Below are positions 17,193 to 50,957 of a DNA stretch of 64,000 nt, piece after piece (the stretch's first letter is position 1; every line of letters begins with the position of its first letter). Position numbers and translations under genes: made by a program. This DNA is from Marsupella aquatica. Its lineage: Eukaryota; Plantae; Marchantiophyta. The stretch is taken from assembly GCA_973895155.1 (NCBI GenBank), contig OZ316899.1, positions 581,573 to 645,572 of the forward strand, read 5' to 3'. A model generated the notes under the pieces. That model had not been told where the DNA came from and made no database searches. It saw only the letters and a list, made by a program, of their open reading frames with translations.

Positions 17193-20100
17193 TGTCGCAC
17201 CCCTACCCTGGGCCTTAAATCCGGGTTAGTGTCGTGGTGCGACCTCGACCACCAGTAGGGGTGAGGGTTTGGGCAAGGAGGTGTGTAGTGACCTTCAATA
17301 GCCCTAAGTCGGGCTAAGCCGCTATACTTACTGGTATAACACTCGCATAATTCGTACTTGTCATAGGTATATTTATTTTCCACCGCTGGAATTTTCCCTC
17401 AGTTAGTGACGCGGACTAACTCCCGACTTGGGGCTTTTCAAGCCATCGACGTGACAGGACCTTGTGACATGCAATGAGTGGCAATCCCTACCATTAGTCC
17501 GCACCCGGTACGTCCCTTAAAATGGCGCCTTTGCCCGGACAAAGCATACACACAACACCAGTTACTCTCAGAAACATTAAGGGGAAAAGACTACATTTAC
17601 TCAGCGAAGCATCAGTTTACATGGTTGACTCGACTTCAAAGGGGGTCAGCAGGCCCAACGGCAGTCGATGCCCAGTCTCTACGAGGCCCTGCCTCGCACT
17701 TGCCCAGCAAGCTCGACTCTGGCTCTCACTCCTTGGTATGCTCTGACCCTACTCAGGCCAGGACTCCCCGTGCCTCGCCTTTCTTCTGCTGAGATAACTA
17801 AGCCTTCTCCCCCTTCCCATTGCGGAAGGGGAAGCCTAAATACTACCATAGCGGAAGAGAACCGGAGGATACTACCTTCCGGGGTACTACCTACTGACTA
17901 ACTAACTGCTGACTACCGGTCGCGCTGCACTGACCGGTTGACCGTCGACTACGAGTGTGCCAACCGGAATGGCAGCGGCCAAGCCTACTGACAAACTCTA
18001 GTCCGTTGATGGACTCAATCCTACGTTGGCTGATCCTAACTGACCGGCCCTAATTCTTCCTACTGCCGCTAATCGGCGCCTAATGACAGTCATTCTGTCG
18101 TTACGCCTAACTAAAAGATGCCGCTGACTTAACCGCCTCGCGCGGCGCCTGCTTCTACCCTTCGCTAACTACCCCTTACGTGTGTGCAGTGGTTGGACCA
18201 GGGCTGGTCCCCTTGTCGGGGCGAGACCTCGAGCCGCCTTGATCAGAGGTGGGCCCAGGTTTTCCCCGCTGGAGGACGAGCAGGGTGACGCGGTCCTGCA
18301 AAGCCTTGTTATCCCGTAATGCTTCCTCCGCCTCGTTTGCAGCTTCATCGGCTTCAGTCTGGAGCCGCGCCACCTCCAAGTTGAGCTGGTCGATGGCGTC
18401 GCGGTGGACCTGGTCCTGCGCTAGCAATTTATCTTGTTCGGCAGAGAGACTAGCCACCTGCTGTGCTGCCTGCAGGAATTGTTTGTTGAGGTCGGTCAGG
18501 CTGGTAACCCGAGCCGAAGATTCTGAGCGTAATTGAAGCACGGTGTCGTCCAGCTTCTTGAGTTCGGCCTGCGCTCCGCTTAACTCCTGGGTTAGTCCGT
18601 CCCTCTGTTCGACAGTGTGGACTAAATCCTCGCGGCGGGTCGTTGCCTCCTCCTCGAGGTGCTCTACCAGCATCTGGAGACGCCCGATCTCATTCCCCTT
18701 CGCCATGAGTTCTTCTTCCAAGCGGCTGACGATCCGTGGTTGGTGCTCTAACATGAAGAAGGCTGGCTGAAAGTACGCCGAGACTTGTTGTCCGATGTAT
18801 GTCGCCAACTCCCCAGACATAGTCTGGCTAAACTTCTGGACCAGGTCGTAGGCCATGGTCCCCGAGGCTACTTGGTAGTCCTCCATCCTCTCGGGTACCG
18901 GTGGTTCCTCGGCAGGGGCAATGAGCTCCTCCGTAGTCAGCGCTCGGGAGGGGAAGGTTTCTTCAGGTGGTGGAGGGATTGGGGGTGGTTGTACTGCAGG
19001 TAGCGGAGGCTCAACGGAAGGAGGCGGTGGAATTTCCACAGGGGGCGGTTGCGGAGTATTAGTCGGGGCTTCCAGCTCGGGGTTTGTCCGAGGGACAGTA
19101 GTCCGCGTAGTCGGGGTTGCCTCCTCTGGGGCGGGGGTGACATTACCCGGGGCTGAGGTGGCCGTATTCTTTCCTCTGGCCTCCCGCCGTGCCTTGTACC
19201 AGGCGAGGATAATGGCGATATGACTCCCCAAGTAAGTCTTCCCTCCAATAGCCATACCACCCTGAGCCCGCTTCAGCTCCCCCGAGAATCTTCGGTAGAA
19301 GAATTGGGCCCAGTTTCGTCGTTTGTACTGTTCCACCTGCACTATCGTGCAGAGGGAAATCTCGGATCGTGGCTCAATCATGTGTAGGGTAGTCCGTATG
19401 AAGTTAAGCCGCTCCATACAGGTTAAGTTGGTGCACGCCCCCTGCTTGTATCCGTTGTCCGTCTTACCCTCGGGTTTGAAGTGCCGCGGCGTATACTCCT
19501 TATCCCAAATTCAGATTTCCACCGGCACCGGCCCGGTTGGTAGGCCAAAAATTTGCGTTAACCGATGCTCCGTGAGTGATAAGGTCTGCCCCGAAACCTT
19601 GGTGGTTGACGCATCAGTGTTGAAATTGGAGATGAACTCACAAATCTCCTTCGGCCCGGCGGCGCACGGCCTCCATAGTAAGTGGGCGAACCGCTCCAAC
19701 TGATGCTCCTTGAGATAGTCCGCATGTTCGAGTTTCTTGATCGCGATCCAGACTACCTCGGGGACGCGGATTACCTGTAATAAGTTGGACTTTGGGTTAT
19801 CCGGGGGCCGTCGGGTCTGGTTGGTCGGGGGGTTTGCCGGGGCAGGTGCAGGCGCGGCGTCAGTCCGTGTTGATTCGGGGGCCGTCGTAGTCCTTGACCG
19901 CTTACGAGGACGCTGTTCGAGTTGCGGACTAGCTCGCTCGGAACCCAAAGAACACTCCGCGTTGATTACTGGACGGACTTGGGACTGGTTCGGCGGTACT
20001 CCGGTGGTCATCGGTTGAGGCGCTGGGGTAGCCATATCCCAGTTGAAGGCGTTGGAGCTTTCCCCGAGGAACGTGAGATTACGCGCCGCTTCCCGTTGTC

Positions 20101-21030
20101 TGCTGATGTCTTCTTGGCGCTTTTCGGCTGCGATCTGCTGGTCTAGGTACCCCGGAATCTTGTCGAACTCCGCTTGAGTAAGCCGCTGGTTGCCCTTCAG
20201 CTTAAAGAACTTAGCTGGAACCTCAAGAATCGCCTCTGCTACCGATCTAAGCCCTTCCTCGCTGAGATATAGTTCGGTGATGTAGTCTCGCAGCTCGTTA
20301 TAGCTAGAATCCCTGGTGATGGCTGTCCTTTCGCAATTAACCAGTGCTACCTTAGTTACCAGCTTTGCGTACCTTTGTTCGTAAGCGGCTTTCTCGGGGC
20401 AAGAGTACCAGTAAGTCTCGGAGAACTTAGCACCTACCTCGCCAAACAAGGTCCAAAATCCCAAGGCTGTGAGGGTCATACTAACCTCGTAGTCCGGTTT
20501 GTTGCGTCCACGTTCCCACCTGGCTGGTCCTTTTTTGCGGAGGCCTCGCTCGTCCTGACTAAATCTCGCCACATTCCGCTCTTCTCCCTCGATAATTTCC
20601 TCGTAAAGGTCGACTGGATTCAATCAAAAAGGCGAGCGGATGGCAGCGTCCGTGAATTCCAAAAAGGTAAACGTGAGCGAATGGCCCGCAGTGCCATCGG
20701 CTCCTCTCTTATGGGGGTGCCCGGACGAGCCCGAGCGTGAGAAGGTCAGGCCGTTTGGTCATTGATAACGAGCTGAAGTCGGCGTCTCGGTCCAAGCGTG
20801 ATTCTTCTAACTGATTTTTACTCCGCTGCCGCCACCGTACCTCGGTCGTGCGTAATAATCCCTTTCCTGAACTCGTAATTATTTGGTTATCTTAACCTAC
20901 TCCTAATCTAATCATAATGGCAACTTGACGGCTATACGTGCTATTCTACGCTATGGCTACGGTCCTAATGACCGTATAAGTCCTAATCTACGACCTGGGT
21001 TCGGTCAAGTGACACGTTACCCGTGTCACA
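17193..21030 (-). repeat. 5' LTR of element B (3838 bp)
   Basis: Direct repeat of 7331..11168, followed by TSD CCTTC. Confidence 0.97.
18176..20623 (-). CDS. Second copy of the LTR-encoded protein of element B (same internal TGA at 19511..19513)
   Basis: Differs from 8314..10761 by five amino acids across the two ORF-track translations. Confidence 0.8.
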
Positions 21031-25362: not shown

Positions 25363-27732
25363 GGGTTGGCGTCAGATGGGGTCAGCCCCCATTCCCTTGG
25401 TGGGAAAGGATGCCCTACATCAGTTTGGCTGGTGGTTGTTATGAATTACAACCTTCCACCATGGTTGTCCATGAAAAAAGGCTTCTTATTGTTGTCATTG
25501 ATTATCCCAGGTCCATCTAAGGTAAAAAACATGGACACCTACTTGGCACTATTGGTTGGGGAACTTCAAAAATTATGGGACGGTGTGTGGGTCTATGATG
25601 GTCGGAAAACTACAGGGGGATTACCGCGTGTCTTCAAATTAAAGGGAATCAATATGTGGACCATGCATGACTATCCTGGTAAGGTTTTCATGTATTAAAG
25701 AGTTTCTTTTAGAGGAAGTCCCTCATATTTATGTATGTACATGAACTTTTTAAATTCTTTGACTCTAATTGAGAAAGTTGTTTGGGTTTGGGTTTGTTTC
25801 AGGGTTACAAACTCAAGGGTATAAGGCATGCTCCACTTGTGGTCCAAGCCTTGAAGATATGGCCAAGTACTCAAGATGGCTTTGCAAGATAATCTACCTT
25901 GGGCATACAAAGTTTCTTCCACTTGGACATGAGATGAGGTCTGACCCCCTTCTATTTTCAGACTTTGACATGGTCAATGGTGATGAGCGTGACATACCTG
26001 AGCGTACATCCTTTGCACATTGGAAATCCATAGCTGATAGGGTGGCAGACCCTGACGACCCCATGACATTTGATGGAAGTGGGTTGACACGGTGGACTAT
26101 ACTAGCCACTTTATTGTATTGGCCGAGTTGAAGATTCATCACTTGTTAGACCCCATGCATATAGAGGGAAATGTTGGGAAGGCTTTGATCAAGCATTTTT
26201 ATGGAGAAAATGACCATAATTTTAGGGAGGCATGCCAAGATCTAGAACGACATCCAGATGTATGGATAACAGTTGATGAATCAACAAGGATGGAACACCG
26301 TCCTTCAGCTCCTTGGGTTTTGAGTGTTGGTGAAAGAAGAGAGTTTCGACAACGTATAGGTCAGATGCGGTTTCCTACAGGCTATGGTGCCAATCTCCGA
26401 AAAGCTTTTGGGATGGAGGACAGTCATAAGTCGCCAATGTATCTGAAGACACATGACTATCACCGTTTACTAAAATATATACTTCCTATGGCAATCATAG
26501 GCTTGGGCAGTGAAGAAGTGCAAGATGCCCTCTGGTCATTGGGCACTTTGTTGAGATGGATATGCTCAAAGGAAACATATGAAGAAGAGATCCCACGTAT
26601 GGAGGTATTGGCAGCTGAGGTAGTTTGCAAGTTAGAGAAGACCCTCCCTCCGTCCTTCTTTGATTGTCAAGTGCATTTACTTGTTCATCTTGTGAGGGAG
26701 GTTGCCATTGCTGGTCCAGTGCATTGTTGTTTGATGTATTGGTTGGAAAGGTACATGGCTGTGTTAAAGGCTTATGTACGGAATCGTGCATGAGTGGAGG
26801 GGAGCATGGCAACAGGATACTTGGCAGCTGAGAGTATATTCTATTGTAGCAACATCTTAGCTACCATTGATCCTAGTTGTCCACGCAATTGGATGGAAGA
26901 GAGAGAAATGGAAGAGGATTGTTTAACAGGAGCCAAAAAAACACGCTTACTGACCGGAGTTGAGTTGACACAGATGACTACTTTCATGTTGAGTAATAGC
27001 ACTGTCATGGAAGAATGGAGAGAGTTTTATGAGGATGCAAAGAGGGAGAGTCGTCGCCCAAGGATTTTTCCAAAGTTCCTTGAGTATATGAGGGAGAAAG
27101 TACTTCAGTTGGATGCTATGGTGGCCCAAGGTGAGAGTGTATCACATTTTCCAGATATGACTCATGACGTTCGAACAATTGTTCATGGCCCTTTGAGACT
27201 TGTTCAGACCAAAACAACAATGTGGACATAAGGGAGACATTTCAGGATTTCTGACCTTGATGAGAAGAGGGGTAGAACTTTTGATTGTGGAGTTCAAGGG
27301 CAGTTCATGCAGGATTCACAAAGTAGCCGCCATGACACCAATGTCATCGGAGATGTGGTGCCTCACTATGGGAAGATAGAGGAGATCTTGATTGTATCCT
27401 ATGATGCAGATACAAAATTTGAAGAGTATGTCTTCAAATGTAAGTGGTTCAAAATTCACTTGGTTGGTGAGAATCGCACGGTACTTCTTGATGATTGTGG
27501 GTTTACTCGACTGAAGACATCAGCAACTAGCTTTCAACCATCTCATTGGCAAACATCTGAACCGTTTACATTCCCAAGTCACCTTGAGTAGTGTTTCTAT
27601 ATTCCGTACCCACCAGACCCAGAGGAGTGGTCAGTTGTTATACCGTATGTGCCACGGTCTCGTTCCATTATCTCAGAAAAACCTGAAGTTATTATTGTGT
27701 CAAACAAAGGAGAGGATGAGGACCAAGTTTGA
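25363..27732 (+). pseudogene. CACTA Tnp2/TnpD transposase (Transposase_21 C-part, DUF4218-, DUF4216-like), interrupted 5' by element A
   Basis: SDGVSP...YNLPPWL...IIPGP; WTMHDYPG then intron; LDPMHIEGNV; LKTHDYH; PPSFFDCQVHLLVHL; FKCKWF; several stops and frameshifts. Confidence 0.92.
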
Positions 27733-30019: not shown

Positions 30020-30480
30020 CGGATAGTGAAGGTGTCCTCTATTGGTGTTGATATTGGATATGGTCTATATGCTTTGGAGGACATTGTGGTCCTTCCACAA
30101 CCATTGGGGTTGTCTATAATGCAAAGAGTTGGAACATTTTGTTGTGTCAACACCCAAATTGGGGGGTGTATGCATTGATGATGGACTCTGACCCAGATGA
30201 GGTTTTGACTAGACCGTGGTACTATAGGATGATTGATGGTGACCCTATTTGGAATGGTAATTTAGCAGGGTACATCAATAGTACCACGAGTAGGGGTAGA
30301 GATTTGGAGGCTAATATAGAATGGATCCAAATTTTTGGCCCACCTAGACATCCATATTTTGTTAAACATATGGATCACCATATCATAACAGTAGCCATTA
30401 GGACCATTAGAGCTGGTGAGGAAACCTTGTGTGAGTATGAGTGGGACGCACCAAAATTGTCCCTACGTTGCCATCCATGA
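30020..30480 (+). pseudogene. SET-domain (lysine methyltransferase-like) gene remnant
   Basis: VKVSSIGVDIGYGLYALEDI (frame from 30026), frameshift, then MIDGDP..GNLAGYINS...ANI...IITVAIRTIRAGEETLCEYEW; these match the SET motifs GxGLxA, NxxxxINxS and IxAGEE-Y. Confidence 0.75.
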
Positions 30481-30681
30481 TAGTATGTTGGACTTAAACA
30501 TGTATATATATTGGATTGTCTTCCCTTTTTTACAATATTGGATTAATGGAAGTGATGGTGATTTTCATTCATGCATGCATGTTATGAGATTGTTGCTAGT
30601 GATATTGTTGTGATGTTGTATGTACATGAATGATAGTCTAACCAATATGTGCAACTTGATATTGGGGTCATTTCATGAGCA

Positions 30682-31818
30682 ATGTGGCAGCACCTTCTTG
30701 AGGCCATGGTGGCCAACCGTGGCCATCATAAAGGGATGCAAGAGGATGAGGTACAACATGAGGGTGAAAATCCTACCCAAGTCCATGTTGACGAGGAGAG
30801 GGCCATGGATGAGCTCATGGACCAATTTTATGATGATGGCCTGGGAGACATTGGTATGGAGGACATTGGGGAGGATGATGAGAACACCACTCATCCACAT
30901 CTTTCTAAGGGGGCCCAAAACAAGGATTGGGAGGAGGCTCAACGTCATGCACCTACTTGCATATTTGGAGGGAGCCCCTTATCTTGGCTCTCTGGTATAA
31001 TGTTGTTGCTTAATGTGCAACAAAGACATGGGGCAAGCATCCTACTATTGGATGATGTTTTCTGTACCCTGCATGATTGTATTTTTCCACCAAGCAACAC
31101 CATGCCAAGCTCATGGAAGGAGGCTAAACAAGTGTTGAAGTCCATTGGTTTGAACTATGAAGTGATACATGCATGTGTGAATGATTGCATTCTTTTTAGG
31201 GGCGAGCATGAGAATGCAACTGCATGTCCTAAGTGTGAGAAGCCGCGGTACCGTGATGACATGCTGACTGGGAAGGTGCCTCAAAAGGTTATGCGATACT
31301 TTCCTCTCATCCCTCGATTGCGACATAATTACCGTTGTGCAAAGTTGGCTGAGTACATGGTATGGCACTCAAAGAATCATTCGGATATGGGCATGGACTC
31401 GGGTGCCATGAGGATGATGGTTGATTCTCCTGCCAATCAATTTGTAGAGGGCAGATGGGGCAAGTTTAGAACTGACCCACAACATGTTTGGCTTGGGTTG
31501 GTAGCCGACGGCATCAGCCCTTTTGCATTGGCGGGTAAGGCAAATCCATATTTAGTATGGCCTGTAGTTTTGACAAACTACAATATCCCTCCATGGATGG
31601 CGATGAAGAAAGGTCATTTACTACTCTCCATGATCATCCCTGGTTCTAAGCAAGTAAAAAAGATTGGTACCTACTTGCAACCATTGCTTGATGAGCTTCT
31701 GCAACTTTGGAGAGGAGTGGATTTTTATGACGGACGTTGCAACATAGGAGGTTTATCTCGTGCATTTACTCTGAAGGGCATCCTTATGTGGACATGCATG
31801 ATTTACCAGGTGTGGTAA
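30682..31818 (+). pseudogene. CACTA transposase 2, N-terminal half (Transposase_21-like), ends at an intron donor
   Basis: IHACVNDCILFRG...CPKCEKPRY, YFPLIPRL, ADGISPF, YNIPPW, LLDELLQLW; same subfamily and equivalent intron position as CACTA-1; no TIR found. Confidence 0.9.
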
Positions 31819-34975: not shown

Positions 34976-35959
34976 TGTAGTTTGCTATGAAGAACCAAAA
35001 ACACACTTAAAGGTCTTCAAACTTGGTATTCGTTCCCGTAAAGAACAAGAGTGGGTTGGTTTGATAGATTTAAACAACAATAATAGACTTAAACTGTTTT
35101 CTAGCACTAGAAGAATCCGAGGTGAACTGAGACCGCAATATATGACTCATTTTGGCTCATGTGACTTCATTGTGACTCAACGTGACTTGACCCACGCTGT
35201 GACCCTTGGAGTTGCAAAAGTTGAGACCAAAAAATGGAAGTCACTATTGATACTGGGCTTTGCAACTTGCCTGATACCCATTTGTGACTGATCTGTGACT
35301 TTATTGTGGAGTCTAGCCTTGTTTCGACGTGACTGCAATATGACTTCAGCGAGTCACATCGTAAGTCACATACATGACTTACCCCCATTCAACAACGACT
35401 AGCGTGTGACTATTTAGTGTCACAGGAGAGACCAATGGAGACCCTGGCCCGCGTCACACAACAGAACCATTTGGGACTCTATATACTCATGTTTATAACT
35501 AATAAGGTTCACATGCAAGTTATAACCATGACTAATGAACACAGAGGGACAGTTCATAAGGAGAGAGAGCACTCGACATTACAATACATAGAAACCTGAT
35601 GTTCTAACTTTAGAAATATAACACATTCAATACAAGAAATGAACATAGCATGAATGACATCCACATGAAACAAAGCATCATATAAGCAGATCCTACATAA
35701 AATATTCATAAGAATTAAACACAATCACAATCTTGCTAAAAAATGAAGATCATTTGAATTCCAATGGAATAGTTTACAATGTGATCAATGTAATTTAGAC
35801 AAAACAGGAACTCATAATTGATGACTGTAGGATGAGATAACTGAAAGCACATGCATGATACTATGAATCTCCAAGAGGACATGATTCTTGTACTGCTTCT
35901 TGACATCTAAAATCTACATAACATGACTCACACTACAAACAAATAATGGCATGACATTG

Positions 35960-38900
35960 TTATGGATCCTCTATGAACTTGCTTGGCCATAATACCAAAG
36001 AACCTGCAGCATCTCCAAGTGTCTTTTGAGGAGGATCATCATTTGTGTTTGGAATGGGAAGGACATCTTTAGGTTTCACTAGTAATGTGACTAACACTAC
36101 TGAATAACCTGGGGGAATCCTCTTGCCATGGAACGTTGTGGAACCAACCTGCACTCTGCCAAATCCTACTCGTGTTCCACTCTCATCAACAGCTAACAAG
36201 CCACTTTGTCCCTCAGCATTAGGTGCTTTCCCCACTTCCACCTTAGATCTTTCTGTCAGCACTGTTCTTGGAGGTTTGTATGAAACCTTTGACGTGGCTC
36301 TGCTCCCACCAGCAGACTTGCTTCGTGTGCGCATGCTTCCTCTCTTCACAGTAGTGAAGCTAGGCTCAGTAGGTTCCTCTGTTAGGACTATCACAGTAGC
36401 AGGTTCATCACCTGGGAGTGTCATACCAACTAACTCTTTGGTTGGATTTATCTCAACAAGAGGCACACCTGTCATTGAGAATGATACATTCTGCAAATCA
36501 TTTATCTCTGCAATGGAGTCAAGATCTACATAGCATGAATCTGGCTCAATGGTATCATTGTCATGCTTGCTGATATCCTCATTTGCCCCAACATTGATAT
36601 CATCCACTCCCTTGCCAATGTCATCCTCATCCAAACATGGTTGACTGCCCTCTGTCAAACAAGTTGCTTGTACAGACTGCAACTTTGTTGCCTCTAAATT
36701 ACAGCGAGTATTTGCCAGGTTCTCGTACTTCTTCTCTGTAGCACCTGTCTTATTCTCTATGGACACAACAACCACAATATATGTTACTGAAAATAACACA
36801 TTCAACAAACAATGTCAATTCAAACTATACATTTAATAATCATATCCCACACAGTTGTAAAGGCCTTACCTTCAAGCCTACATGTCGTTGGCATGCCAGA
36901 AGAGTGCATCGACTTTACCACCTCAAGTGGTGATGGTGGAACTCCTGCAGAATTGGAATCAATTTTATCTCTCACCGACACAACAGCTTCCATTAATGTC
37001 TTGAAGTTCACATGGAACAAGTCAATCAATGAATTCAAACGTTCATTGATCTCTGGAAGACATGTTTTGACAGCCTTCAAACGACCACTTATCTCTGTAA
37101 GTGAAGATCCACCTCCCTACATGACACAGGGGTATAGGTTCAATCACTCCATATGAAATATTGGGCAATATATGCACAATCAATGTTATATACAGTGTAC
37201 ACCTGAAATTCAACGCAGGTCATTCAATTACCAATCAGAACTCATATAACTTACATGCTTGGAGGATTCAGATGCACCCTCTTGAGCCCGGGTGTTCACA
37301 ATTTCAGCCCTCAACTCTTCTTTTGAAGGGCTTTGCCCCAATTGGGCTTTCTGCACATGCATGGCAAACACAAGTTATCGATCAATATTCAGGGAACGTA
37401 CACTAAAAAACAAAGTTTACATGTATGGGTTTACACTAAAAACAGTACATAGTGTAGCATAAATTACATAGCTAGGCCATTCATTCTTACCAAACGTTTA
37501 GCTGTCGGTGCAGTGCCGGTCCTTCCTGTCAGATTAGGGTTCTGAACACTCAACCTGGCCTCGGTCATCTGCGAACTCTTCTTTTTTGAAGCATCTGTTA
37601 CAAAATAAGCTACTAACCTTGCCCACACTTTATCATCACAACTGGCTGGTGGAGGCATATCTGGCTTCTCCCCACCTTCCTTCCAAGCCTTATGCATTCT
37701 CCACCTCTCTTGCTTGATAATTTTACCTGCTGTACTCTCTAGGCAACCTATGTCCATGCCATCATCACTACCCACATAATTCCATTTGGCAGCAACATTT
37801 TCACATACAGTCTTCCAATCTTTTGGATGTTGTTTTTTAAAATTAATAACACTCACATCTAACCAACGCAATACTCCAACTTTCAAATCAGCATGCCATC
37901 GGTTCTTGCGAGGACACTCAGCATCCACCCATTGTCTCTCATTCAACTTTACGTTCCCTTTCTTTGTCACCTCCCCTCGTGCACTGCTCTCGGTAGTACT
38001 GGGCGTTGTATTGGCCACCCCTTCATTCACCCTACCTGGGGTTCTGAAGCCACCTGGGAAAATACAATGCCATTCATGCTTGAGAACTACATATAGCAGA
38101 ATGGATGACGGCAACATTCAATGCTTCACTTCAAGAAAAATTCTTCAAACATACATACCTGTAGCTCTGCCTGTAGATGCCTGTGCAGGGACTGCACTTT
38201 GAAATTGTTGCGACCCTGGACCACCTGTCCAGCCTAGTACAGGGGCCGGATGATGTCACTTTCTAGGTATGTGTGTGCAAACATATGTACTGAAAACTAA
38301 GTACAAACTGTAGGAAAACAACTGAACATTCACCGACATACCTGTCCCCCTTCCGTGCTGCATCTGCATAGGGGCATTAGTGAATACTTGAGTCGATGGT
38401 TCGACTGTCCAACCTGCACACATACATTTTCTATCATTATACATGTGCAGAGTCCCCCCCACGTGAATGGACTCCACATATAATGAGTTCTTCCATTCCT
38501 GACAAGATCAGACATTACCTGCTCCTCTTCTAGCGTTTGTAGGTACTGAATTTTGATATCCCTGCCAATTACCTTCACCACCTTCCCAACCTTGTTCATT
38601 CCACGACCCACCACCATCCTCCCAACCTGGTTCAACCCATGTCTGTCCTTGTGGACATTGGAACTGATCATTACTAGCATTTGCCCAATCAGGTTGGGCA
38701 GAATCTGCATGCAATGGCAGGTGGACAAAATTTCATGTTGTCTGAATCCAATACATCCCAAACAATGTCAAAAATTGATATGCAGTCTGAAATTCAGGAG
38801 TGCCATGCCTTCACAAAGAACTGGCATATAGATATATACTCACATCCCCATGGTTGAGGTGGACGTCCATACCCACGAGATTGTGGGTTTGGACCTGCTC

Positions 38901-39460
38901 TGCCTCTACCATGGGCATAACCTAGAGCTTGCCCCCTGCCATAGTATTGGGCACCAGCCTGGGATCTACCACTACTACCACCTCGCCAACCTTGATCAGA
39001 GGTCAGCCCCCCCTGCTGGTATGGTGCATGCACAGGCTTCGAAGGCAAAACAGAACTGGCAGGACGCTGCATCACATCACCAACTACAATGTCAGGAACT
39101 AAGCAAGGTACATATGTGTAGTACTGAACATATGAAACCTCTAAACAAGAGTTTTTAACTCAAAACCTTGTTGGGAAAACTACTTACATGTTTCTTTTGG
39201 GGCTGCTCTGCAATGTATTCATCTTCATAACCCCCATCCTCATCCATTTCCTCTGGAAAATACTCATCATCTGCATCTTCTTGTCTAGTGTCTGCACCCA
39301 CCTGTGCAGCATCAATGTCATCTCCACATTCTGCCATTGTAGGTACGACCTTCTTGCTCAACCTGTCACTCCGACGCACAGGCCCAGAGATAGTGCTGGT
39401 CACCCTTCTTGCGTACTCCTTTTGTTTCTTTGAAAGTGCTGTGGCTCTGCGACATTCCAA
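35960..39460 (-). CDS. Multi-exon TnpA-like gene of CACTA-3
   Basis: Open exons 35960..36808, 36820..37080, 37464..38117, 38794..39075 and 39155..39460. C-terminal GRVQ...FHGKRIPPGYSVV...LPIP...TLGDAAGSLVLWP resembles the Tnp1/En/Spm (Transposase_23-like) domain. Exact splicing not resolved. Confidence 0.7.
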
Positions 39461-39821
39461 TATGAGAATACAGTCACAATTTCAGTGCCACATTGAACTA
39501 TTCATGTCACACAAACTCAGTGGAGGGGTGTAGTTGAGAATCGTTCCCTTACAATTCAGCCACATCCTTTTCCAGATCTAGTTCTGCGATTTTGGCTTTC
39601 ACGTATGCTCGTTGTTCCATAGCTTTCCTTTCATACTCACACATCTCTGTGTCACTCTGTTCCATCCTACTGGACCACAAAAACATGTCATCTATGGTCA
39701 CCCCGTATAACACAATGCAACCACAATCACCAGGCATCCATCCATACATCTGTGTTGCTTCAGAATTACTTTATTACACATCCTTCCCCTCACTAATGTC
39801 CATGCAAACAATTCACATTAC

Positions 39822-41171
39822 TCATGGCACAGGCACACTGTTGGCATCTGCATCTCTGAATTTGCCTCCTTCAGCAAATGCATCTACCCTTGTCACAGGA
39901 ATGAAGTCCCCGCTATCATGAACTACAGGCACTTGGTCTGAACGCCGACGATCAAAGGCACTATGAGAGTGTAAATGAAACTCAAGGTTTGATCCTTCCA
40001 TCCGACGTTGCCTGGCCTGTTTATGACACACTACACGCCAACCTGGGGAGTCTTCCACATCCAGGAAGAAAGCTTGCTCCACCTGACTAGGAAACACAAA
40101 TGGCTCAGACCATTCGGGCAATTTCCCTCTGAAATTGGCCAGCAAGAAACCGTCGTTGTCTCTCTTCATGGTAGCCCTGTTACCAAGCCAATCCTGCCGC
40201 ACCCATGAACCTTTCATAAGAATCACAGGACTGGACACCGCCCCATAGTCCAGAGCCCATATGTCAACTAATTCTCCCACATATCCCATCTCCATCCAAG
40301 CCCTGTCGTGATTGTGGCTCTGTTGCTCAAATACAGTGATGAGCCCGCAGTCATTCATCACCTTGTAGGCACTGTCACCATCCTTCACTCGGAAGTGATT
40401 CCCATATGCTCTCATCCGTTTGTAAGTCTTCACTTTCAGGCTAGGGACATTAGACAGTAGGTAAACATCTGCATCCATGTCTGGGTGGGTCTCGTGATGC
40501 TCTCTAATTGCCACTCTGATCCACTCCATGAAACCTGGAAAAGTTGTTCCTGCAGTGGGATGGGCCGCCTTCAATGACTCATACTCCCTGAACGAACAAC
40601 CACACAGCATTAGCTTGGGTAAACATGAACAGGCTAAAGGAGAAAACCACACGAACACAACATTTAAGCTCATGAACTGGATTATAGCACATGTATGCAC
40701 TCACTGTATCCAGGGTTCCATCACCACAGTGTTGTGCAATACAAAGTCATGTGCCAAGTCTCTCATAGATATGGTCAGGTTCTTTGTGGTTGCAGCCCCT
40801 TCCAGTACTTCACCTATCACCCCTTCCTCCTCATCAGAATTCCACACCCTGGTCTTCACGTGCTCATATTGTGCTATGTATTCAGTCAGAAATCCCAGAG
40901 TCTCATCCTTGATGTAACCTTTAGCCATGCTTGCTTCAGGTTTGTAATATGTTCTCACGTGACCTTTGAGTAGCTTCATGTACCGTTCCAAAGGGTACAA
41001 CCAACGAGCACTCACAGGCCCAAATTGGTGTAGCTCTTCCACAACATGGACAAGTAGGTGGGTCATGACATCAAAAAATGCGGGAGGAAAATAAATCTCC
41101 AGGTCACACAGCACCTGAGCGACATCTTCTGTCAGTTGTGGGAAGTGTGTTTCATCCTTGGCAGATTGCAC
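39822..41171 (-). pseudogene. CACTA-3 transposase, C-terminal half only (DUF4218- and DUF4216-like), intron 40588..40704
   Basis: LEIYFPPAFFDVMTHLLVH, WLYPLERYM, PEASMAKGY; GT-AG intron keeps the frame (WIQ-EYE); YGNHFRV, EPFVFPSQVEQAF. Transposase_21 domain absent upstream. Confidence 0.88.
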
Positions 41172-41758
41172 AAGGACATCTCATCCTACTGGCTCCTGAA
41201 AGTCTGATTCGTAACCTTTCACGCTGCCAAAGCTTATTATCATGGCGTGATATCCTTGTGGGATGATGCAAAGGCAGTGCCTGTGCCCTGGGCTGGGTCT
41301 GGGGAGGGTGGTGACCAGGGTGCATTGTAACAGGCTGGGAGCTCTGCAGTCATGGACAGCAGTGAACAAGGATGCCTAATGGTGGTATTTGTGTTCCATA
41401 TATCCCTGATTGTATCTGCCAAAAGAGTTAACATAACGTGTACTAAATTCTCACAAACCCTAAACCACCCCAAAAGAAAAAAACAGGTTCGCAAGTAGTG
41501 TACCTATTGTCAAGTGAATGACACAAAATTCCTAAATGTTGGAGGGTGTCACCACCTCCTCCGCTGTCCTCAAATGTACCGCCTCTGCATGTACGTTTAC
41601 AGTGACACCCCCAGGCAGCAGGAAACAACAATCCGCCAACAGTAAAATAAGCCCAACTGCCACCAACCATAACAAGGTACATTAGTTCAAAGATCACATT
41701 TATTTCAATGATCTGATTTATACAAAAAAACTTGTGTCCAAACTGATGCTACTACTCC

Positions 41759-42637
41759 TCACTCTGATTCAGAATCGCTAATGACCCATTCCTCACTTGT
41801 TGTCTCATAGTCCTCTCTGTAAGGATCCTGACCCTTCCGTGGCCAGGCCTCAAAAAGATCATAGTCCATTGGGTTTTGACGCTTCCCAGCTGCTACTGAT
41901 TCCACAAGCCAAGCATATGAAACCACAAACACATTATGGGACATGACATAAAAGCGAATGTCTCCCTTCCCAAACTTGCGGCAGGCTTTGGGATATGACT
42001 TAGTAATGACATGAGTGGTGTCCTCTGTTATATTCTCCTCCACTGTCCCACCTAGGTCAAGCACTGTGGACTTGTACACTTTGCACTTAACCTCTCCAAT
42101 TCCCGCCTCCACAAATACCATGCTCAGCCCTTTCAGAATGGGGGTTGGTTGCTTCGTCTCCTCAGCCAACATACTCTTCAGCCTTGTAGAGCTCTGTCCT
42201 TTGTTGAGTACAGGTCCATATTGGAGATCAGCAAGCCGTGCCTTTGCTTCCCAGACTTCTTGTTCAGCCCAAGCTGATGCAGTAGCTTCTTCATCCTCCC
42301 ACAACTCATATTGCTCAGTATCCTGTACAATCTTATGTGCTATGGAATCTGTGATCCAAGAGGCCTCAACTACTTTTAGGCCTTGCTTAGTAATTGCAAA
42401 ATTCATGTAGGACCATGACCACTTCTTTATCACTGATAGCCATGTCCCTGCAACAACATGTGTAGTCTCTGGAGTGATGTCCTGAACTACAGTGCCATGG
42501 AGCTCAGAGAATCGTTTCTGTACAGTTGGCCAATGCACTTTGGTCAACCCATGCTGGCCATGGACCAAAATCGCTCTGACCCCTGTAAACATTGTTGGGT
42601 GGTCACACTTTCTACGTTTACCAGGCTCCATGTACAC
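41759..42637 (-). CDS. Tandem BRCT-domain protein (DNA polymerase lambda-type BRCT x2), 292 aa, uninterrupted
   Basis: Two internal repeats: MFTGV..ILV...GTVVQDITPETTHVV...SWITDSI...YEL and LKGL..VFVE...GGTVEENITEDTTHVI...KFGK...YAWLVESVAAGKR...YDL. Confidence 0.8.
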   Translation of the reverse strand: MYMEPGKRRKCDHPTMFTGVRAILVHGQHGLTKVHWPTVQKRFSELHGTVVQDITPETTHVVAGTWLSVIKKWSWSYMNFAITKQGLKVVEASWITDSIAHKIVQDTEQYELWEDEEATASAWAEQEVWEAKARLADLQYGPVLNKGQSSTRLKSMLAEETKQPTPILKGLSMVFVEAGIGEVKCKVYKSTVLDLGGTVEENITEDTTHVITKSYPKACRKFGKGDIRFYVMSHNVFVVSYAWLVESVAAGKRQNPMDYDLFEAWPRKGQDPYREDYETTSEEWVISDSESE

Positions 42638-43223
42638 ACACCCTACGTGATGACAGTGAATTTTGGAAGAATGGGTTCACCTGACAATACAAGGACAACA
42701 AAATTCCTGCTTTTTGAGTTGATCTGGCCCACTGGTGCTCAGGTCCGATTTTGATAGGTACAAGGGATATGTGAACAATACATACTAGGCACCTGCACGG
42801 ATGCAGGACATTGTTTGAATATATACTACAAAATCCATATCCGTGGTGAAATGAAGTGCAACCAACTTGTCATGGCACATACATATTTTGTTGTAAAGGA
42901 GGATACATTCAATGACAAACTTATAGGGCAATTTGATTAATTGCATGCCTGATAATTTATACGCTTACAACTTAGAAGTCCTGTTTTAATTTAGCAGTCT
43001 GATGAAAGTGTTTATGAAAATGACCACTCAGCCTAAATACTTCCAAGAAGGCTTGTAAGGATAAGTTTGTATAGGCATGTACCCAGCCACTGACGCCAGA
43101 GCACAAGATAAGTGCTGCCTATATAAACTCGCCTACCCAACTCCTTTTCAAAATTGGAATCTTTGCAATCTCAAAAAATAGTACATCCACATCAGGTGCA
43201 CTGTGCATGTACAATGTTCAGCT

Positions 43224-44160
43224 TCACAGCCAAGATATGTGATCTCTCACAGGAGTGCGCGAGGTAGGATCAATGGCATGGCGATGACAATAAAATATCC
43301 ATCGATCAACACCATGTGCAGAGTGATCATAGATTTCTCTGTCACAAGCATAACCCTCTGCTTGATGATCTTTCAGGCAATGATAGTGCCACATAGTGGG
43401 ACACCTACCACAATGGACTATGTCAGTCCAGTAGTCATCATCATGCTCACCACATGCCTTGCACCTATGAAGTGGGCAAGCTGTGGCATGAGCAGGCAAA
43501 CACTCAAAACAGGGTAAGCCTCTTAAATTAGGATATTTTGCTTAGTGCAGGCATAATAGGATATAAGTTATGTACTGTTGACCCTAAACCCTGGACCCAA
43601 AATTGCTCATACATCAAAATTTTAAGTAAATATCCTCTGTGTTGAAGTCAGAGTGTTAAGCTATAGGTCAATGGTATCTGGTCTGTGCATGCGGTGTGAC
43701 AAGTGGTCCTCTAGAGCATGTGATCCAAACATGTGTAGACACCAAAGTCACCGGTGGTGGGGTCTGGGAGGGCAGGACAAGTGACATCACCAGGCACACT
43801 GCAGGATGGCGAGTGGTTCCAGATGATACATTGTGCTCTGTGCAAAAATCGGCATCCAAGAGAACGGTCATCCAATTCTGGGCCAGAAGCCCTACAGGCA
43901 GGACAGTCATATTGGCAACTGTGTACACACCCTTGGCACCTAATTTGTGGCGGGTCATGTACAAGAGACACAAATACCAAGGATGTCGGGAAGGGTACTG
44001 AAGCAGGTAGAGGCCGACTGTAGTTGTTCCTGGAAACAACAGGGTACTCAAAGTACCATGCAGACTGGGCTGGAAGGATCCCAAGTCTGACATACTCAAG
44101 GCGCAACATCTCTGCCTTGCGTGCAAGTCGCACATGTTCAGCGTTGCGGGTCCTCACCAT
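43224..44160 (-). pseudogene. EDM2/NSD-type PHD-finger gene (at least 2 exons, premature stop at 43711)
   Basis: Last exon CPLHRCKAC...VHCGRCPTMWHYHCL...RWIFYCHRHAIDPTSRTPVRDHISW parallels the EDM2 motif CPLH.C..C...CRRCPKSYH..CL...IYC..HEID...TPVRDH; upstream Cys-rich exon RCQGCVHS...CRFLHRAQCII. Confidence 0.75.
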
Positions 44161-45168
44161 AAGTGTTGCTTTCGTTGTGATGTCCTCTGTTCACGTCCTT
44201 TGATGAGCAAGGTGAGCAGGAGGTCGACTTGCCTCGCCAACAGCAACCACCTAAACTAATCAGTTCCCACTCATTGTCTTGGTTCCAACTACAGGTCATA
44301 GTATACACATAGCATGAAACGTGCATAGTACATATTTGATTCTGAGTTTATGAGTTTCCTAAGACAAAGAGCTTGGTGATAAACCCATATTCTCGACGGA
44401 CATGTATATCAATCATATTAAACTCCTGTTTTTTCATCCAGAAAGACCGAAAGTCTCACCTTGCAGGTTGCAGCAGAGAGAAAATTCACTGGTTGTCGTG
44501 TTGTGCAAGTGAACCTCCACTGATGCCCCGGTGTAGCCCCTCAGATGCAGGTGACACTTACCAACTCCCAAGTTGCCTGGTCTAACAAAAAATGCTTATA
44601 TCTTCAGAACTTTATAGAGCAAGTACATGATCACATACTTCTGGATCTATTCATATTTGGAACTCTTGCCAACTACAACTCCCATTATGCACAAACTCAC
44701 ATCAACAGAGAAAGATACAGAATGCATACTTACTATGGCTCTAAGCACCTTCACTACCTTGTTGAACCCAGTCCTGAAGTCTTTTCAGCGTGTTTGTTGT
44801 GCTGTCTCCTTTGGCACCCAACACCTTAGTCCTTGATGTAACAGAATGCGATTTTACAAGTTAGATGCTTTGGAACCTTCTATGGTCTTAGCTGAATTGA
44901 TGTCATCGTAAGTGGTGAAAGACAAGGAAGACGAAAGTTGGTTGAAGAGCTGTGGACAACACACTAGCATGAAGTGCTTCAACCAATCCACTGCCAAACG
45001 GAACTCTTACACAGTCACATTCTTTCAGTAAACAGAAACTCAGTCAAACTTCATAATCAAAGTACAGACTCTGAAGGACCAAAGGAGGATGTTGTGAGTT
45101 TCTCTGTTGTTTAATGTGTTACCCTTCTAGTTTCAAAGTTAGCAAATGCTGAATAATGTGTCTACCAG

Positions 45169-45508
45169 ATCTTTGAAAAGAAGCCCACCACAATTAAGAA
45201 CTTCGGTATCTGGGTGAGGTATCAGAGTTGTACAGGTTATCCCAACATGTACAAGAAATATCGTGATACCACATTAAACAACCACACAGCAGATGTATGA
45301 TGAGATGGCTTCTTGTCATAGAGTTCGGTTCCCTTGCATCCAGATCATCAAGACTACGACAGTCCCTGTCTCTCTGTGCAAGCGAGAAAGTACCAAGCAG
45401 TTCCATGATTCAAAGATCAAGCTCCCCTTGACGTACCGCAAGATTCAACCTCCATCGCGAAAGCTAAAGACGACTTACAAGGCCACCAAGCCCAACACAT
45501 TTGTTTGA
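45169..45508 (+). pseudogene. RPL18A: Captured last exon of 60S ribosomal protein L18a (eL20), frameshifted
   Basis: After acceptor ctaccAG: [34 protein letters not shown], then [59 protein letters not shown]. Confidence 0.93.
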
Positions 45509-48500
45509 GTAGTGCGGGTGCAGGTTCCCAATTTTGAAACAATTTGGCTCATTTTATGTCCCGAGGGACTCCAGGAGTTTATGTATTGAGTTTCTAGGTC
45601 AAGATGCTTAATATAAGGAAATTCAATTATCACTTCGTTCCCAACTTCTATTAATTGAATATACACAAGCTGGAAGCAAGAAGACAAGCCACAATCTAGC
45701 ATCTTAGCCAAACACAATCGTCCCGACAAAGCAAAACTCAGCTGGACAGAAGTCACTCGGATCCACAAAAAATTGAAGATTCACCTCCAAGCCGGAGGCC
45801 GATCACTTCAGTACAGCAGCTTCTGGACGGAACAAACTCTGCTCAGCCCCACAGAAACACAAATATTAAGGCTCCAAGTCAGAGCTCACAAACAGAAACT
45901 CAGATAAATAACATTCAAAATCTGTCCAGGTTTGTGCAAAGTGTACATATTCATTCTTCTGGAATGAACACACAATGCATACATCGCCTAGACACAGTCA
46001 TTATAAATCATTGGGCAATTGGGGACCACTAAGCAGGTGTGTTCCTATTTCGAGGCTACAGGAAAGGATAGAGTGACACCAAACTGAAGAGTACACCAAA
46101 AGAAAAACAGCAAGAACCAAAGTCAATCATGTGTGGATAAATTGCACATGGGAAGTTCCCCTGAAGAAGCAGCAGTTGCTAACATTGTCACCCGAACCAC
46201 ACCCAGTTTATTACCTCAATGTCTTCAGCCTCAATATCCAATCCTCAGCCCCCTGGTGCTTCCGTGTTTGTTCTGAAAATTTCTGTGATGAAATAATTAT
46301 TCAATACATTCAATAGCAAAGAGAACTCAATCACAAAAGAAAAATAGTTAGTGTGAATGCTAATTTCTCAACACTTAACTAAATTCAAACCACCAATTCA
46401 AGTAGTAAGTTTCAAAAACTTGCCTTTACATGAAGTGAAACCAATTGGCCATGCATGTTACTAAAGCAATAAACAAATAATTAGGCTCAACCCCGGGCTC
46501 AACACACAGGCAAACTACTCGAAACATGCTGCTGAGAAGTAGCATTTTTTGAATGTCAGACTATGTGTAAGTGCCATGATCGTGCTCCTACGTTTCACAA
46601 GGAGGGATGGCCCGAAAGGGAGAAGCAACAATGTGGAGTCTATACACGTAGCACAAATCCCAGTTTAGAAGGGTGGATGAAGTTCAGACAAGAGTTCAGA
46701 ACTTGCCATTTGAGATTGCCAATCTGAACTTCACATTCAGACAGGACTTCATCCAATTCAGGAGTTCAGACAATCTGAAGAGGACTTTGGACTTGAATGA
46801 GGGACAGCGTGGCCATATAGTTATCCTTGTGGCCTTCAGCTGCGTGTCTCAGGCTGAATTTCACTTTCCAGTTTCGAGAGTTCTGAAGGTCTAGTTTTAG
46901 TAACTTCCTCCTGACTCGACTTGGGAGCATTCTCCCTATTTGCTAGCTTGTAGTTAGCTTTGACTCCTGTGAGCTTAGTTGACGACCCTCTTGGGATATT
47001 AATAATTAGAACAAACACAAGTTGTCAAGACAGATTCCACCGGAGCAAAAAGTCCAAAATCAGGTGAAAGAAAACCTAAGGAAAGTCCATAAGAACGAAA
47101 GTAGGAAGGCAGGTGCACGGGCCACCGAGAAAAGTAAAGGATGCATGTGATTAGTGGGGAGGGATCCCAGCAAAAACAGGGGAAAGCAAGGGAACTTGCT
47201 GCTAAAATCAGCTGAACGATTGCACGGTTCCTATAAATTTAGTGGACCTTAAGGCCGTCTGTTCACCCCCCCCACCCCATTGCCAGAGCACGGGGCACAA
47301 GGCATGTTCTGATACAGGGAGGAGCAAAACAGTCATGTCAAGCAAGAAGTGTGGAGAGACCAATCAGTAAGCAAAAATAGGGGAGAACAGACATACATCA
47401 GCAGCAGCAGGAAACAAGAAAGATGATACTCTGTTCCATCTTAGAGTCGGGGACACTACTGCAACACCGGGACTGGAGATAGCATCCAGCAGGCCGGCGA
47501 CCCATGCCAAAAGGGCAGAGCAGCAATCCGCCATGTAGCGATAGGCGAGAGCAGCGATTACGACGATGAAAGATGGTCAAAGCTGAAGCAAAACCCCTAA
47601 AGATGCAGCTTGGCCATACTCTCCTTCCTCACCTCATAGCGCTAGGCATTCAACCTCCCTCTTCAATGAACCTCACAGCAGCTTGAAGGTCGATAGATTT
47701 TACCTCGTCTCCTGAGCAGAAACGTCTGCATTAGCTGAACAGAGCCCGGAACAGAGCTATCGCATTTAGCCTCCCGACTCCAAAATCGAACGCAACACAA
47801 CCTCCAACTCCCAATGGCAGCTCAGTAGGTTGATCAGCTCGGTCAATGCAGGTCAGTCGACCTCAATAGCCACACTAGAAGCTCACCGCAAGTCACTCAA
47901 AGGTCAGACTAGAAGCTCCGCCGCCTTCACACCGTAGCAAAAAACAATGAGACCAATATTGAGCAAGGCGACCCTATTTGAATATTTGGCGACCATCAGG
48001 CTCCACCCCTCCTTTCTCGCTACCGTTCCCCCATGTGATGGTTAAGCTTCTCAGGACACAATCAATCGCACAAATGTAGCTTAAAGCAGGACCTCACTAA
48101 GCAGACTATCGGTTAGGACCTTATAGACATAGAGATAGATAGGTCAATGCAACCTTACTTGGGCCGATGCAGCATGTCTCTTGACAATGTGAAGCAGCGC
48201 AGCATTCCTCCACCTAGCTCGCAGTGATCCTCCGCCTTGCTTGCAGTAACCAGCCTCCGCCTAGCTAGTTTGCACTGTCACGGTTGCAACTTTTTGTGCA
48301 ACGACTTGGCCCTCCTACCAACTACGAGCTCCCAAAAGTATGTCGAGCAGATGTACACTCAGGCACCACCTCGTAGAGCTCAACTCCAAGTCGGCAGCTC
48401 TCACTTGAAACTCAATAGCAGCTTAGCTCACCAGCAGGTTGAAAAGCGACAATGGACTCCCCTCAAAACTGATTGGCAGACCTCCACACTGACGCTCGTA

Positions 48501-50957
48501 GCAGGCCCAATCCTAAACACATTTGCACCCTAAAGTCCAGTCGCGCTCAAACACTTTCAAACAACCCTGCAGGAAGTTCGCGAAGAGTGCAGCTGGAATG
48601 AAGGTCGTCGACTCCCAATTTCCCTCGCAAAACCAACCTCTGCGGCACACTGACCCTGAACACTTAGGGCAAGTAGTACCCCCAAAATCTCTCGCAAAAC
48701 CAACCTCCAAGGTACACTGACCCTGAGGGAAAGTAGTACCCCTCACATGTGGGCAGCCATCGAGTGACTTAGCAAACAGGTTGGTTTGGACATAAAAGAA
48801 CCAATGCAAATGACTTAGCAAAAAGTTCAATGTGGGGAGAGTGCACTTTGGTCAAGAACAAGGCCAAATATAGTCAGGTATGAATCCACATTATAAGTGA
48901 AAGTACCCACCATTCTGATGAAAACCACCATATTTATACCCATTATATTTGGACCTCGCCAACCATGAGTGTGCAATATGTAGTTGCACCGGGAGTTGCA
49001 TATTAGGGATTGGCATCCGAAATTGGCTAATGGGGTATGCATGCTGACGGAATTTTAAAAAATGATGTCCAATTCATATTGCACTATTGTGGAGTAACTA
49101 ACATAACTTACCTATTTCTTACTTACCAGTGTTACAATAGCGACATTGGATAAAGTTGTAAGCATGACTTCCCACAACCTCACCAAAACTTAGTTGGTAT
49201 GATGTAACTAACATGACACCCACAAACTTGGAGTCGCATATTTATGAAGGTCTCGCACAAGTCACATAGGGGAGGGTCTCAGAATGGGTGGTTTTCTTCT
49301 AGTGTAGCTACACATAGTAATCAAATTTGATTACTTTACTAAGGTATTTTGAAGATCGCTCCACAGCGGTGAGAAGTTTTCAATGATATCTCAACATCAT
49401 GTAACCATAAATTAATGAAAAGGGAATGATTAACAAAATACACCAAAAATATCTTAAAGTATGCTAAGGGAGTCTGGAATTGACCAAGGTTGCTCCTTAA
49501 ACATAAGTCAAAATGAAAAGACTTAAGGATTCAAATCCATATTGCTTTTCTGGTCTAAAATGCTTACTAGAGTACTCTTTTAAAGTGCCGTCAACACATC
49601 TTGTCTTTTCTTTCTAAGTGATATTCGGACAAGATCTAAAAGGTAGCTACTTCAACATTTAGATGGTACTAAGTAACATGAAAGAAAATCCATCAATTTC
49701 AATGAGATTTAAACTCAATGAGTTAACTTTAAGAACTCAAGAGATTGCAATGAGTCACCAACAAGGAATCTGTCATTACAACTCAAAAGATTTGCACAAA
49801 AGGAATTTTACTTCTGGTGTTATTAATCAGAGATAGAAACACAAGGAGGCAAGTCTCTCCAAATGTTAAACCTGATCTCGAACTCATAGATTCATGATCA
49901 ACTAGTTTAACACAAAGAAGAGGCAAAAATGCATAACTTTACCATACCTCTACATTAGTGGTAGAGGTGTCTTATAGTGGTGACCTACAGAATGAGAGAT
50001 CACAAGGTCAAAGAGACGTGCCTCTTCATACTCCTCCAAAAGTCAAAACAACAATTCAGTAAGTGAAATTCCAAGAAATGGCTAAGTAAGAACACGTAAA
50101 GCCGTAAAAGCGTAAAGGCGTAAACTCATAAAAGCATAAAAGCATAAGCCATAATCCGTAACTCGTGAACGCGTAATTGCGGTACACTTAAAAACTTAAT
50201 GATTTCAACTATTCCTAACTTTCTACTCCTATCTCGAAAAGTTCTGAAATTTTGCTAGTGAGTTTCCCTATGCACAGAGTATACACTAAATAAGTTTCAT
50301 AGATTTTAAAGCTCTATAACTCATTTTGAAAAATAGGAAAAGATGTACTACTCTTAAAACTAACTAAAAACACTTAGACTACTCCCCAAACTTGCTGTCG
50401 GATGTCTTCTTGTTCGAGTAGCTCCACTGTTGTTACAGCTCAATTTTGTGTAACTTCCATTAGTTTAGCCTGGCGTGGGGATCCTCGAGAGTAGGGTAGG
50501 CATCTCAGTTGCCTTTCAGGATACATTAGGGGTATTCTCTTCCTGAGATAACATATGTCTATTCGAAGAGCTTCTCAATACATCCCAATTACGTCATAAT
50601 TATTGCAAGTAGCAACATATACTTGGGGATAATGGTACATGAACTCATCACTATCCATTTAACATCTCTGAAATACCGGTTGAAGTGGGCCAGGGTTTGA
50701 GTAGTGACATTGTTGCAGATCCTCTGTTTCTCAGCAAATGAGCTGGTTGAAACAAGGGTAACCTTGGGCTCTCAAGGAATGTAATCGTGTTGCAGAGTAG
50801 TAGACTTCTTGCTCTGCATGAGAAAAGAAACCACAAAATCCAGGGCATAGGCTGCAAAATTCCCCAAATATGCCAGAACTAAATCTGGATCCTCTACCTC
50901 TACATCACCTTGGAGTAGCATCACAGCAAGAATAGGCCGGAAGTAGAGAGAGTCAGT

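Follow-up and report, generated by a model that had tools for sequence, protein, structure and literature searches.

Gene content of the CACTA element

The window, by which we mean the whole 64,000-nt stretch of Marsupella aquatica DNA that was analysed, contains a CACTA (En/Spm-type) DNA transposon of 14.2 kb on the minus strand (35105..49304). Terminal inverted repeats occupy 35105-35115 and 49294-49304 and match at both termini, with CACTAGAAGAA at 35105 and, inverted, at 49304; at each end this sequence is followed by 11 further bases and then by CTGAGACC, at an identical offset. Outside each end lies a 3-bp target-site duplication, TAG (35102-35104 and 49305-49307). A duplication of this length is expected of CACTA elements, and the terminal inverted repeats beginning CACTA together with the 3-bp duplication established the membership of the window element. 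Because repeats and duplication are both intact, the element did insert at this site, and the claim of the first-pass annotation that the PHD module examined here is carried by a transposon was borne out.

Read along the minus strand, the element encodes a Cys-rich ORF, a PHD remnant, a BRCT ORF, an N-terminal remnant of the transposase, and DUF4218, DUF4216 and Transposase_24 parts. The TnpD/TNP2 transposase N-terminal remnant (41155..41349, minus strand) is Transpos_assoc-like, reads ...RMRCPCAICQG and ends at an internal deletion. It shares 38% identity with the transposase start in contig L002 before meeting a stop, aligns with positions 5108-5218 of L007, a 13-kb metagenome contig, and on its own gave no Pfam match. 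The remaining coding blocks, all on the minus strand, are the DUF4218 part (40701..41171, Pfam DUF4218 E 3e-28), the DUF4216 part (39822..40700, 45% identity to L007 8031-8798) and a TnpA-like ORF with a weak Transposase_24 match (37464..38117, E 1.5e-4, 36% identity to L007 10480-10998).

We searched the whole of 35105-49304 for Transposase_21, the catalytic domain that marks TNP2/TnpD, and found none. Relative to L007, about 2.2 kb coding for this domain (L007 5219-7476) is missing between 41155 and 41180. Across this junction (41143-41180, minus strand) a stop closes the frame after the ...RMRCPCAICQG motif, beyond which DUF4218 is read in a different frame, and contigs of other copies diverge at 41154-41157. 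Because Transposase_21 has been lost, the window element is a non-autonomous deletion derivative. This deletion belongs to the transposase itself and is separate from the one in the PHD gene described below. The idea that PHD cargo had replaced the 5' half of the transposase is not quite accurate, the PHD cargo lying upstream of the transposase as it does in full-length relatives.

Between the 5' terminal inverted repeat and the first gene, about 5.1 kb (44161-49293, minus strand) held no assignable ORF and contained one 67-nt tandem pair at 48611-48726. Such a length exceeds what is usual for the subterminal region of a CACTA element, and nested insertions may hide there. Elsewhere in the window, a second CACTA transposase fragment lies at 30682-31818 on the plus strand (Transposase_21 E 3e-29), preceded at a distance of about 200 bp by a weak SET-domain-like ORF (30139-30480, plus strand; its E of 0.0012 misses the Pfam cut-off), and a third transposase fragment lies at 25363-27729. 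The PHD gene is absent from both of these other CACTA elements (25363-27729 and 30139-31818). On the minus strand, 8314-10761 and 18176-20623 carry an identical series of ORF lengths (413, 126, 370 and 121 aa) about 9.86 kb apart, which suggests long direct repeats, for example the LTRs of a large GC-rich element (52-58% GC) filling 1-25 kb.

An EDM2-type PHD finger at 43224-43511

The remnant of a triple-PHD gene (43224..43511, minus strand) comprises the last C-x2-C of PHD2, a complete third finger of the variant NSD/EDM2 type and a conserved ...TP.RDHISWL tail, with its stop at 43224-43226. The ORF itself spans 43224-43499 (minus strand; stop-to-stop 43227-43541) and reads ...CFECLP...CPLHRCKAC...CGRCP..WHYHC...FYCHRHAIDPTSRTPVRDHISWL before the stop. 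The first-pass annotation had described the finger as ending right after its IFYC..H.ID....TP.RDH signature, and this is so: the C-terminus ...RWIFYCHRHAIDPTSRTPVRDHISWL is followed immediately by the stop, four residues after RDH in the closing ...IFYC..H.ID....TP.RDHISWL.

A phmmer search of the PHD ORF against 1.84 billion representative proteins returned 43 matches, led by P0001 (245 aa, 56% identity, E 1.2e-24) and P0002 (220 aa, 51% identity, E 3.4e-22). The remaining matches were plant proteins of 460-1800 aa at 32-41% identity, among them P0012 (E 2.9e-5, 36% identity), the representative of the cluster that includes A. thaliana EDM2. The best Pfam family was PHDvar_NSD (E 5.2e-5), at 23.6 bits and so under the gathering score of 27 bits. 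Both results agree with the EDM2/NSD similarity proposed earlier. In an alignment of 32 sequences, the window finger keeps all of the invariant columns (C12 H15 C17 C34 R36 C37 C45 H78), and the nearly invariant columns and the ...YC..H.ID....TP.RDH tail are likewise present. These comparisons support an EDM2-type finger rather than a generic PHD, and agreement with the EDM2-type signature to this degree is far beyond chance.

Structural comparison was less specific. An AF2 model of the 95-residue remnant had a mean pLDDT of 83, and its Foldseek matches in the PDB were nearly all PHD or related cross-brace zinc fingers, including the JADE1 PZP domain, MLL1 PHD3, Pygo and the PHD-C5HCH tandems of NSD3 and NSD2 (4gng, 9gbf). 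All of them were weak (E >= 0.05, none reaching E 0.001), and VIA-align Z was at most 3.5. Several of the best structural matches are PHD fingers solved with H3 peptides, again with weak scores, and a PDB sequence search with the ORF gave only marginal matches to MLL PHD3 (E 0.06-0.09). The modelled fold is consistent with a PHD finger, and its matches do not separate the NSD/EDM2 type from other PHDs.

The upstream Cys-rich ORF is a separate gene

An independent Cys-rich ORF of 149 aa (43711..44160, minus strand) lies about 200 nt upstream of the PHD remnant on the same strand, beginning MVRTRNAEHVRLARK from its own ATG and ending at a natural TAG stop (43711-43713). The first-pass annotation had recorded this ORF and its TAG, both of which are there, and had read them as the upstream exon of the PHD gene with one premature stop, a reading that failed on comparison with two homologues from public assemblies. 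Both P0047 (150 aa) and P0048 align with the ORF end to end, from the MVRTR start (Met49 in P0048) to an identical stop position; identity is 59% and 56%, respectively, in the alignment (56% and 55% by BLASTP), and neither has a PHD part. Because both homologues stop at the same place, TAG 43711-43713 is the normal stop of a separate gene. The Cys-rich ORF is evidently a conserved, complete small gene rather than a PHD exon, and in a corrected gene model it and the PHD gene are not to be merged.

Motifs invariant in this ORF are GC.HSCQ.DCP.CR, WNH and TCPA.PDP.TG. Searches placed it in no Pfam family and found no match in the ESM Atlas, and its AF2 model (pLDDT 59) was too poor for a fold search. 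Against a profile of PHD1/PHD2 it scored negatively (E about 2-3 in a three-sequence search), and tblastn found nothing. A faint colinear Cys pattern visible by eye (C-x2-C / C-P-A / P-L-T-Y) was rejected as evidence for PHD1/PHD2. In L001-L005 and L007, the sequence that precedes the PHD gene contained no homologue of the ORF, the adjacency of the two being documented in this genome only.

Thousands of short contigs from four public runs and two organisms cover the stretch at 82-100% identity. Their summed depth is highest over the Cys-rich ORF and also over the PHD remnant; these are Logan contigs, for which the library type is not recorded. Such abundance marks a high-copy family and says nothing about expression or copy number; among the runs listed as containing the stretch, none is recorded as RNA.

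The PHD gene has lost its 5' part

Stop-free copies, for which the first-pass annotation had proposed to look, do exist, and the family is not limited to single decayed copies. With P0001 as query we found P0046 (226 aa) and P0045 (220 aa), which are uninterrupted single ORFs on contigs L004 and L005. The window aligns to P0046 from residue 132 only and to P0045 from residue 126 only, with 89% identity to P0046 over the last 95 residues (132-226). Compared as DNA, L004 and L005 match the window from position 43511 on, past the stop and into the 3' flank, and there was no convincing alignment of the window 5' of 43511 to either contig.

The N-terminal fingers were sought throughout the window. 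Neither tblastn with P0001, P0002 and P0044-P0046 nor an HMM of these fingers run against three-frame window translations gave anything significant for PHD1 or PHD2; the read-through translations, with X at stops, were used solely in this local profile search. No ATG precedes the zinc ligands of the remnant, and an in-frame TAG stands upstream at 43542-43544. The window copy is without the first ~130 codons of the full-length frame, start codon included, and what it keeps of the three-finger EDM2 module is PHD3 plus the final C-x2-C of PHD2. The earlier description of a stand-alone reader does not apply to it, since two of three fingers and the start codon are gone and only the last 95 of ~226 codons are left.

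Between the remnant and the region downstream of the Cys-rich ORF lies a junction or filler segment (43512..43562, minus strand) that includes the in-frame TAG. In contigs of other copies from the four public runs, matches coming from the PHD side end at 43512 and those coming from the side of the Cys-rich ORF end at 43563. These divergence points fit an internal deletion with ~50 nt of junction sequence. From these alignments, the PHD ORF is the 5'-truncated remnant (last 95 codons) of a single-exon gene of ~220-226 codons.

A conserved PHD, BRCT and transposase order in relatives

Full-length relatives show the arrangement from which the window element departs. On L007, the PHD gene P0004 (187 aa), a BRCT gene, Transposase_21, DUF4218, a DUF4216-like part, a Transposase_24-like part and a DUF8039 ORF lie on one strand, and the coding blocks of the window element are colinear with this contig at 27-55% identity, save for the ~2.2 kb Transposase_21 stretch. 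On L002, 420 bp separate the PHD gene P0002 from the start of a TNP2 transposase downstream of it, and on L001 an ORF with weak likeness to BRCT comes after P0001. Intact genes of the PHD family have a single exon and 187-278 codons, and their N-terminus is unlike the Cys-rich ORF.

The window element carries an intact tandem-BRCT ORF of 292 aa (41759..42637, minus strand; Pfam BRCT E 2.3e-13 in two stretches), homologous to the BRCT gene of L007 (L007 3587-4402; 27% identity, E 4e-23) and sharing its position. Because it is also present in this distant relative, the tandem-BRCT gene is, as judged by homology, a second conserved cargo of the CACTA lineage, set between the PHD gene and the transposase. 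In the window, PHD remnant, BRCT ORF and TnpD remnant follow in the order seen on L007, and the PHD ORF shows the marks of the triple-PHD transposon family, namely a short ORF ending ...RDHI.W, upstream of BRCT and TnpD and on one strand with them. The PHD, BRCT and transposase order appears to be old and conserved, L007 providing independent evidence of it.

Selection and phylogeny of the PHD family

Pairwise dN/dS was 0.12-0.32 among the four intact genes for which DNA was available and between each of them and the window remnant, and was alike in the N-terminal and C-terminal halves of the gene. These ratios show purifying selection on the intact family members. The branch leading to the window copy carries 4 synonymous and 5 conservative non-synonymous changes; replacements are fewer than the neutral expectation, a difference that is not significant with 9 changes only, a number too small to separate relaxed from maintained constraint.

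A maximum-likelihood tree of the third-finger region (unrooted, 105 columns) set nine short proteins, the window copy included, apart from the EDM2-like proteins with support of 100/99. Transposon context is documented for four of the nine (window, P0001, P0002 and P0004). For P0003, P0006 and P0044-P0046 the label rests on similarity, their contigs being too short to show a transposase. A further protein, P0005, is a 280-aa stand-alone triple-PHD protein of Marchantia polymorpha (AP019869.1, L006 10001-11744), encoded by a gene with introns and with no transposase called within 10 kb. It groups on the EDM2-like host side of the tree, and therefore short triple-PHD proteins also occur as host genes.

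Interpretation of the locus

We interpret the locus as a dead-end fragment of a transposon accessory gene that was truncated by an internal deletion and is separate from the Cys-rich ORF, and we give this reading a probability of roughly 0.84. The CACTA lineage carries, ahead of TnpD, a small intronless gene (~190-280 codons) that encodes nothing but the three-finger PHD module of plant EDM2, followed by a tandem-BRCT gene. In the window copy an internal deletion took the first ~130 codons of the PHD gene, with PHD1, most of PHD2 and the start codon, leaving ~50 nt of unmatched sequence at the break and a 95-codon open stretch, the third finger, ~200 nt downstream of the intact 149-aa Cys-rich ORF. 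A second deletion took Transposase_21, so that for any movement the element would depend on full-length relatives as its source of transposase.

The PHD remnant is presumably not translated, because no ATG precedes its zinc ligands, and a broken, non-translated relic is the best-supported description of the window copy. Counting against this, the remnant retains a 105-codon open frame and every zinc ligand; the intact frame probably reflects a recent deletion, not function. One deep contig from organism A covers position 43561, and the junction may be common to many copies, which would make it the mark of a propagated subfamily and not of a single accident.

In the alternative that fares best, a quite improbable one, the deletion gave rise to a new chimeric gene. 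Splicing or fusion would join the Cys-rich ORF to the lone third finger, and a non-autonomous subfamily would express and spread the chimera, competition with the full reader being one conceivable role. The frame and ligands of PHD3 are intact, AF2 folds the fragment on its own (pLDDT 83), and a high-depth contig from organism A lies over the junction region. In-frame GT/AG combinations exist, yet the 74 GT/GC-AG pairs that join the two ORFs in frame in silico are too many to inform, and 600 nt would yield many GT/AG pairs by chance alone. The Cys-rich ORF has also kept its natural stop, the in-frame TAG at 43542-43544 within the 50-nt junction restricts the usable acceptors, and we saw no evidence of any contig bridging both sides of the junction.

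Highly improbable is the two-exon gene of the first-pass annotation (44160 to ~43650 joined to ~43541-43224), which would encode a stand-alone EDM2-type reader with a novel N-terminus, damaged of late by one premature TAG and co-opted by the transposon as an anti-silencing reader or a decoy. What speaks for it is that both ORFs share a strand at a distance of ~200 nt and that the upstream ORF is Cys-rich in a loosely colinear pattern, which HMMER places there with negative scores. Set against this, homologues of the Cys-rich ORF end at exactly the same stop without any PHD part, intact PHD genes are single-exon (187-278 codons) with another N-terminus, and neither the profile search (E about 2-3) nor tblastn gave significant similarity of the Cys-rich ORF to PHD1/PHD2.

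Least credible of all is that this one element recently captured the PHD piece from host EDM2 by Pack-CACTA transduplication, so that it would not be a long-standing transposon gene: CACTA elements are known to capture host fragments (PMC13317346) and the piece is partial, as captured pieces usually are, but its identity to a short transposon-type protein is 89%, against ~30% (alignment) to 36% (phmmer) for EDM2 proteins, it falls inside the short-protein clade (support 100/99), at least three members of that clade, at 37-57% identity to the window copy, adjoin a BRCT gene and/or a TNP2 transposase, and it ends at the family's own stop where EDM2 runs ~850 residues further.

Possible role of the intact family

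Because the intact PHD gene is conserved under selection, in a fixed position and across a diverged lineage, the data favour a gene that works for the transposon. Its product would most likely be a transposon-encoded reader of H3 tails. Apart from the PHD module this transposon protein has none of the domains of EDM2, and it could act as a guide for the element, either by itself or jointly with the BRCT protein, or compete with the host factor. In rough terms, we would soonest expect some other role, or none; chromatin-guided targeting or repair, in partnership with the BRCT protein, is a tentative possibility, and counter-silencing or interference with the host EDM2 pathway a doubtful one.

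A more elaborate proposal, which we regard as improbable, is that the CACTA lineage (PHD proteins down to ~37% identity) encodes an EDM2-like reader of heterochromatic H3 marks and a tandem-BRCT protein that would together sustain its long transcript or its transposition in silenced chromatin, and that in non-autonomous derivatives the lone finger, possibly spliced to the Cys-rich ORF, would compete with the full reader or with EDM2.

Transposons with chromatin tools of their own are rare and informative. To our knowledge, the VANC proteins are the sole well-studied plant case. The EDM2-type histone reader is a host factor that lets transcripts pass through heterochromatin, and if a DNA transposon lineage has indeed kept such a reader under selection, this would be a second and mechanistically different case of a transposon handling silencing or choosing its chromatin. 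In the literature searched, we found no description of a CACTA-borne EDM2-type PHD gene. The window locus, as a truncated copy, is itself no such example; what it illustrates is the decay of the cassette in non-autonomous derivatives.

Comparison with known systems

In its overall state the window element resembles dSpm/I-type elements, which have intact termini and internal deletions and need transposase in trans; the window element likewise has intact termini, a 3-bp target-site duplication and an internally deleted coding region.

The NSD1-3 proteins share the type of finger, PHDvar_NSD being the best Pfam model of the window finger and NSD3 and NSD2 being among its Foldseek matches. The likeness to their PHDvC5HCH or PHD5-C5HCH tandem is limited, the structural matches being weak and the Pfam score below gathering, and no SET or PWWP domain was found in the PHD ORF, the element neighbours or the nine long relatives scanned.

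EDM2 and EDM2-like proteins have in common with the transposon proteins the atypical PHD module (Pfam PHD-1st_NSD + PHD_NSD + PHDvar_NSD) as well as the ...YC..H.ID....TP.RDH... tail, and EDM2 reportedly binds H3K9me2 and acts at genes that contain transposons (PMC7529245). The difference lies in what surrounds the module. EDM2, at ~1300 aa, also has an N-terminal domain of RFD-like type and an ELP domain resembling a methyltransferase (PMC7529245), whereas the transposon proteins (187-278 aa) end right after the module and the window copy consists of its last finger only. Neither the RFD-like N-terminal domain nor the C-terminal ELP/methyltransferase-like region of EDM2 is present in the ORF or in the intact transposon-type relatives. 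Among the nine long phmmer matches scanned, all have NSD-type PHD fingers and four have a DNMT1-RFD-like N-terminal domain.

Pack-CACTA elements also carry cargo, acquired by gene capture (PMC13317346). The window cargo differs from theirs in that it is not a random host fragment, but the remnant of a gene that is intact and selected across a diverged CACTA lineage.

Another parallel is offered by the VANC proteins of VANDAL (Mutator-like) transposons, accessory proteins encoded beside the transposase with a proposed epigenetic role (PMC5735166, PMC10398659). Both they and the PHD proteins are transposon-encoded, lie next to the transposase and have been proposed to act epigenetically. VANC proteins, in contrast, bind DNA sequence-specifically and bear no relation to PHD fingers. 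Experiments have demonstrated that they counteract silencing, whereas such an activity of the PHD family would be putative.
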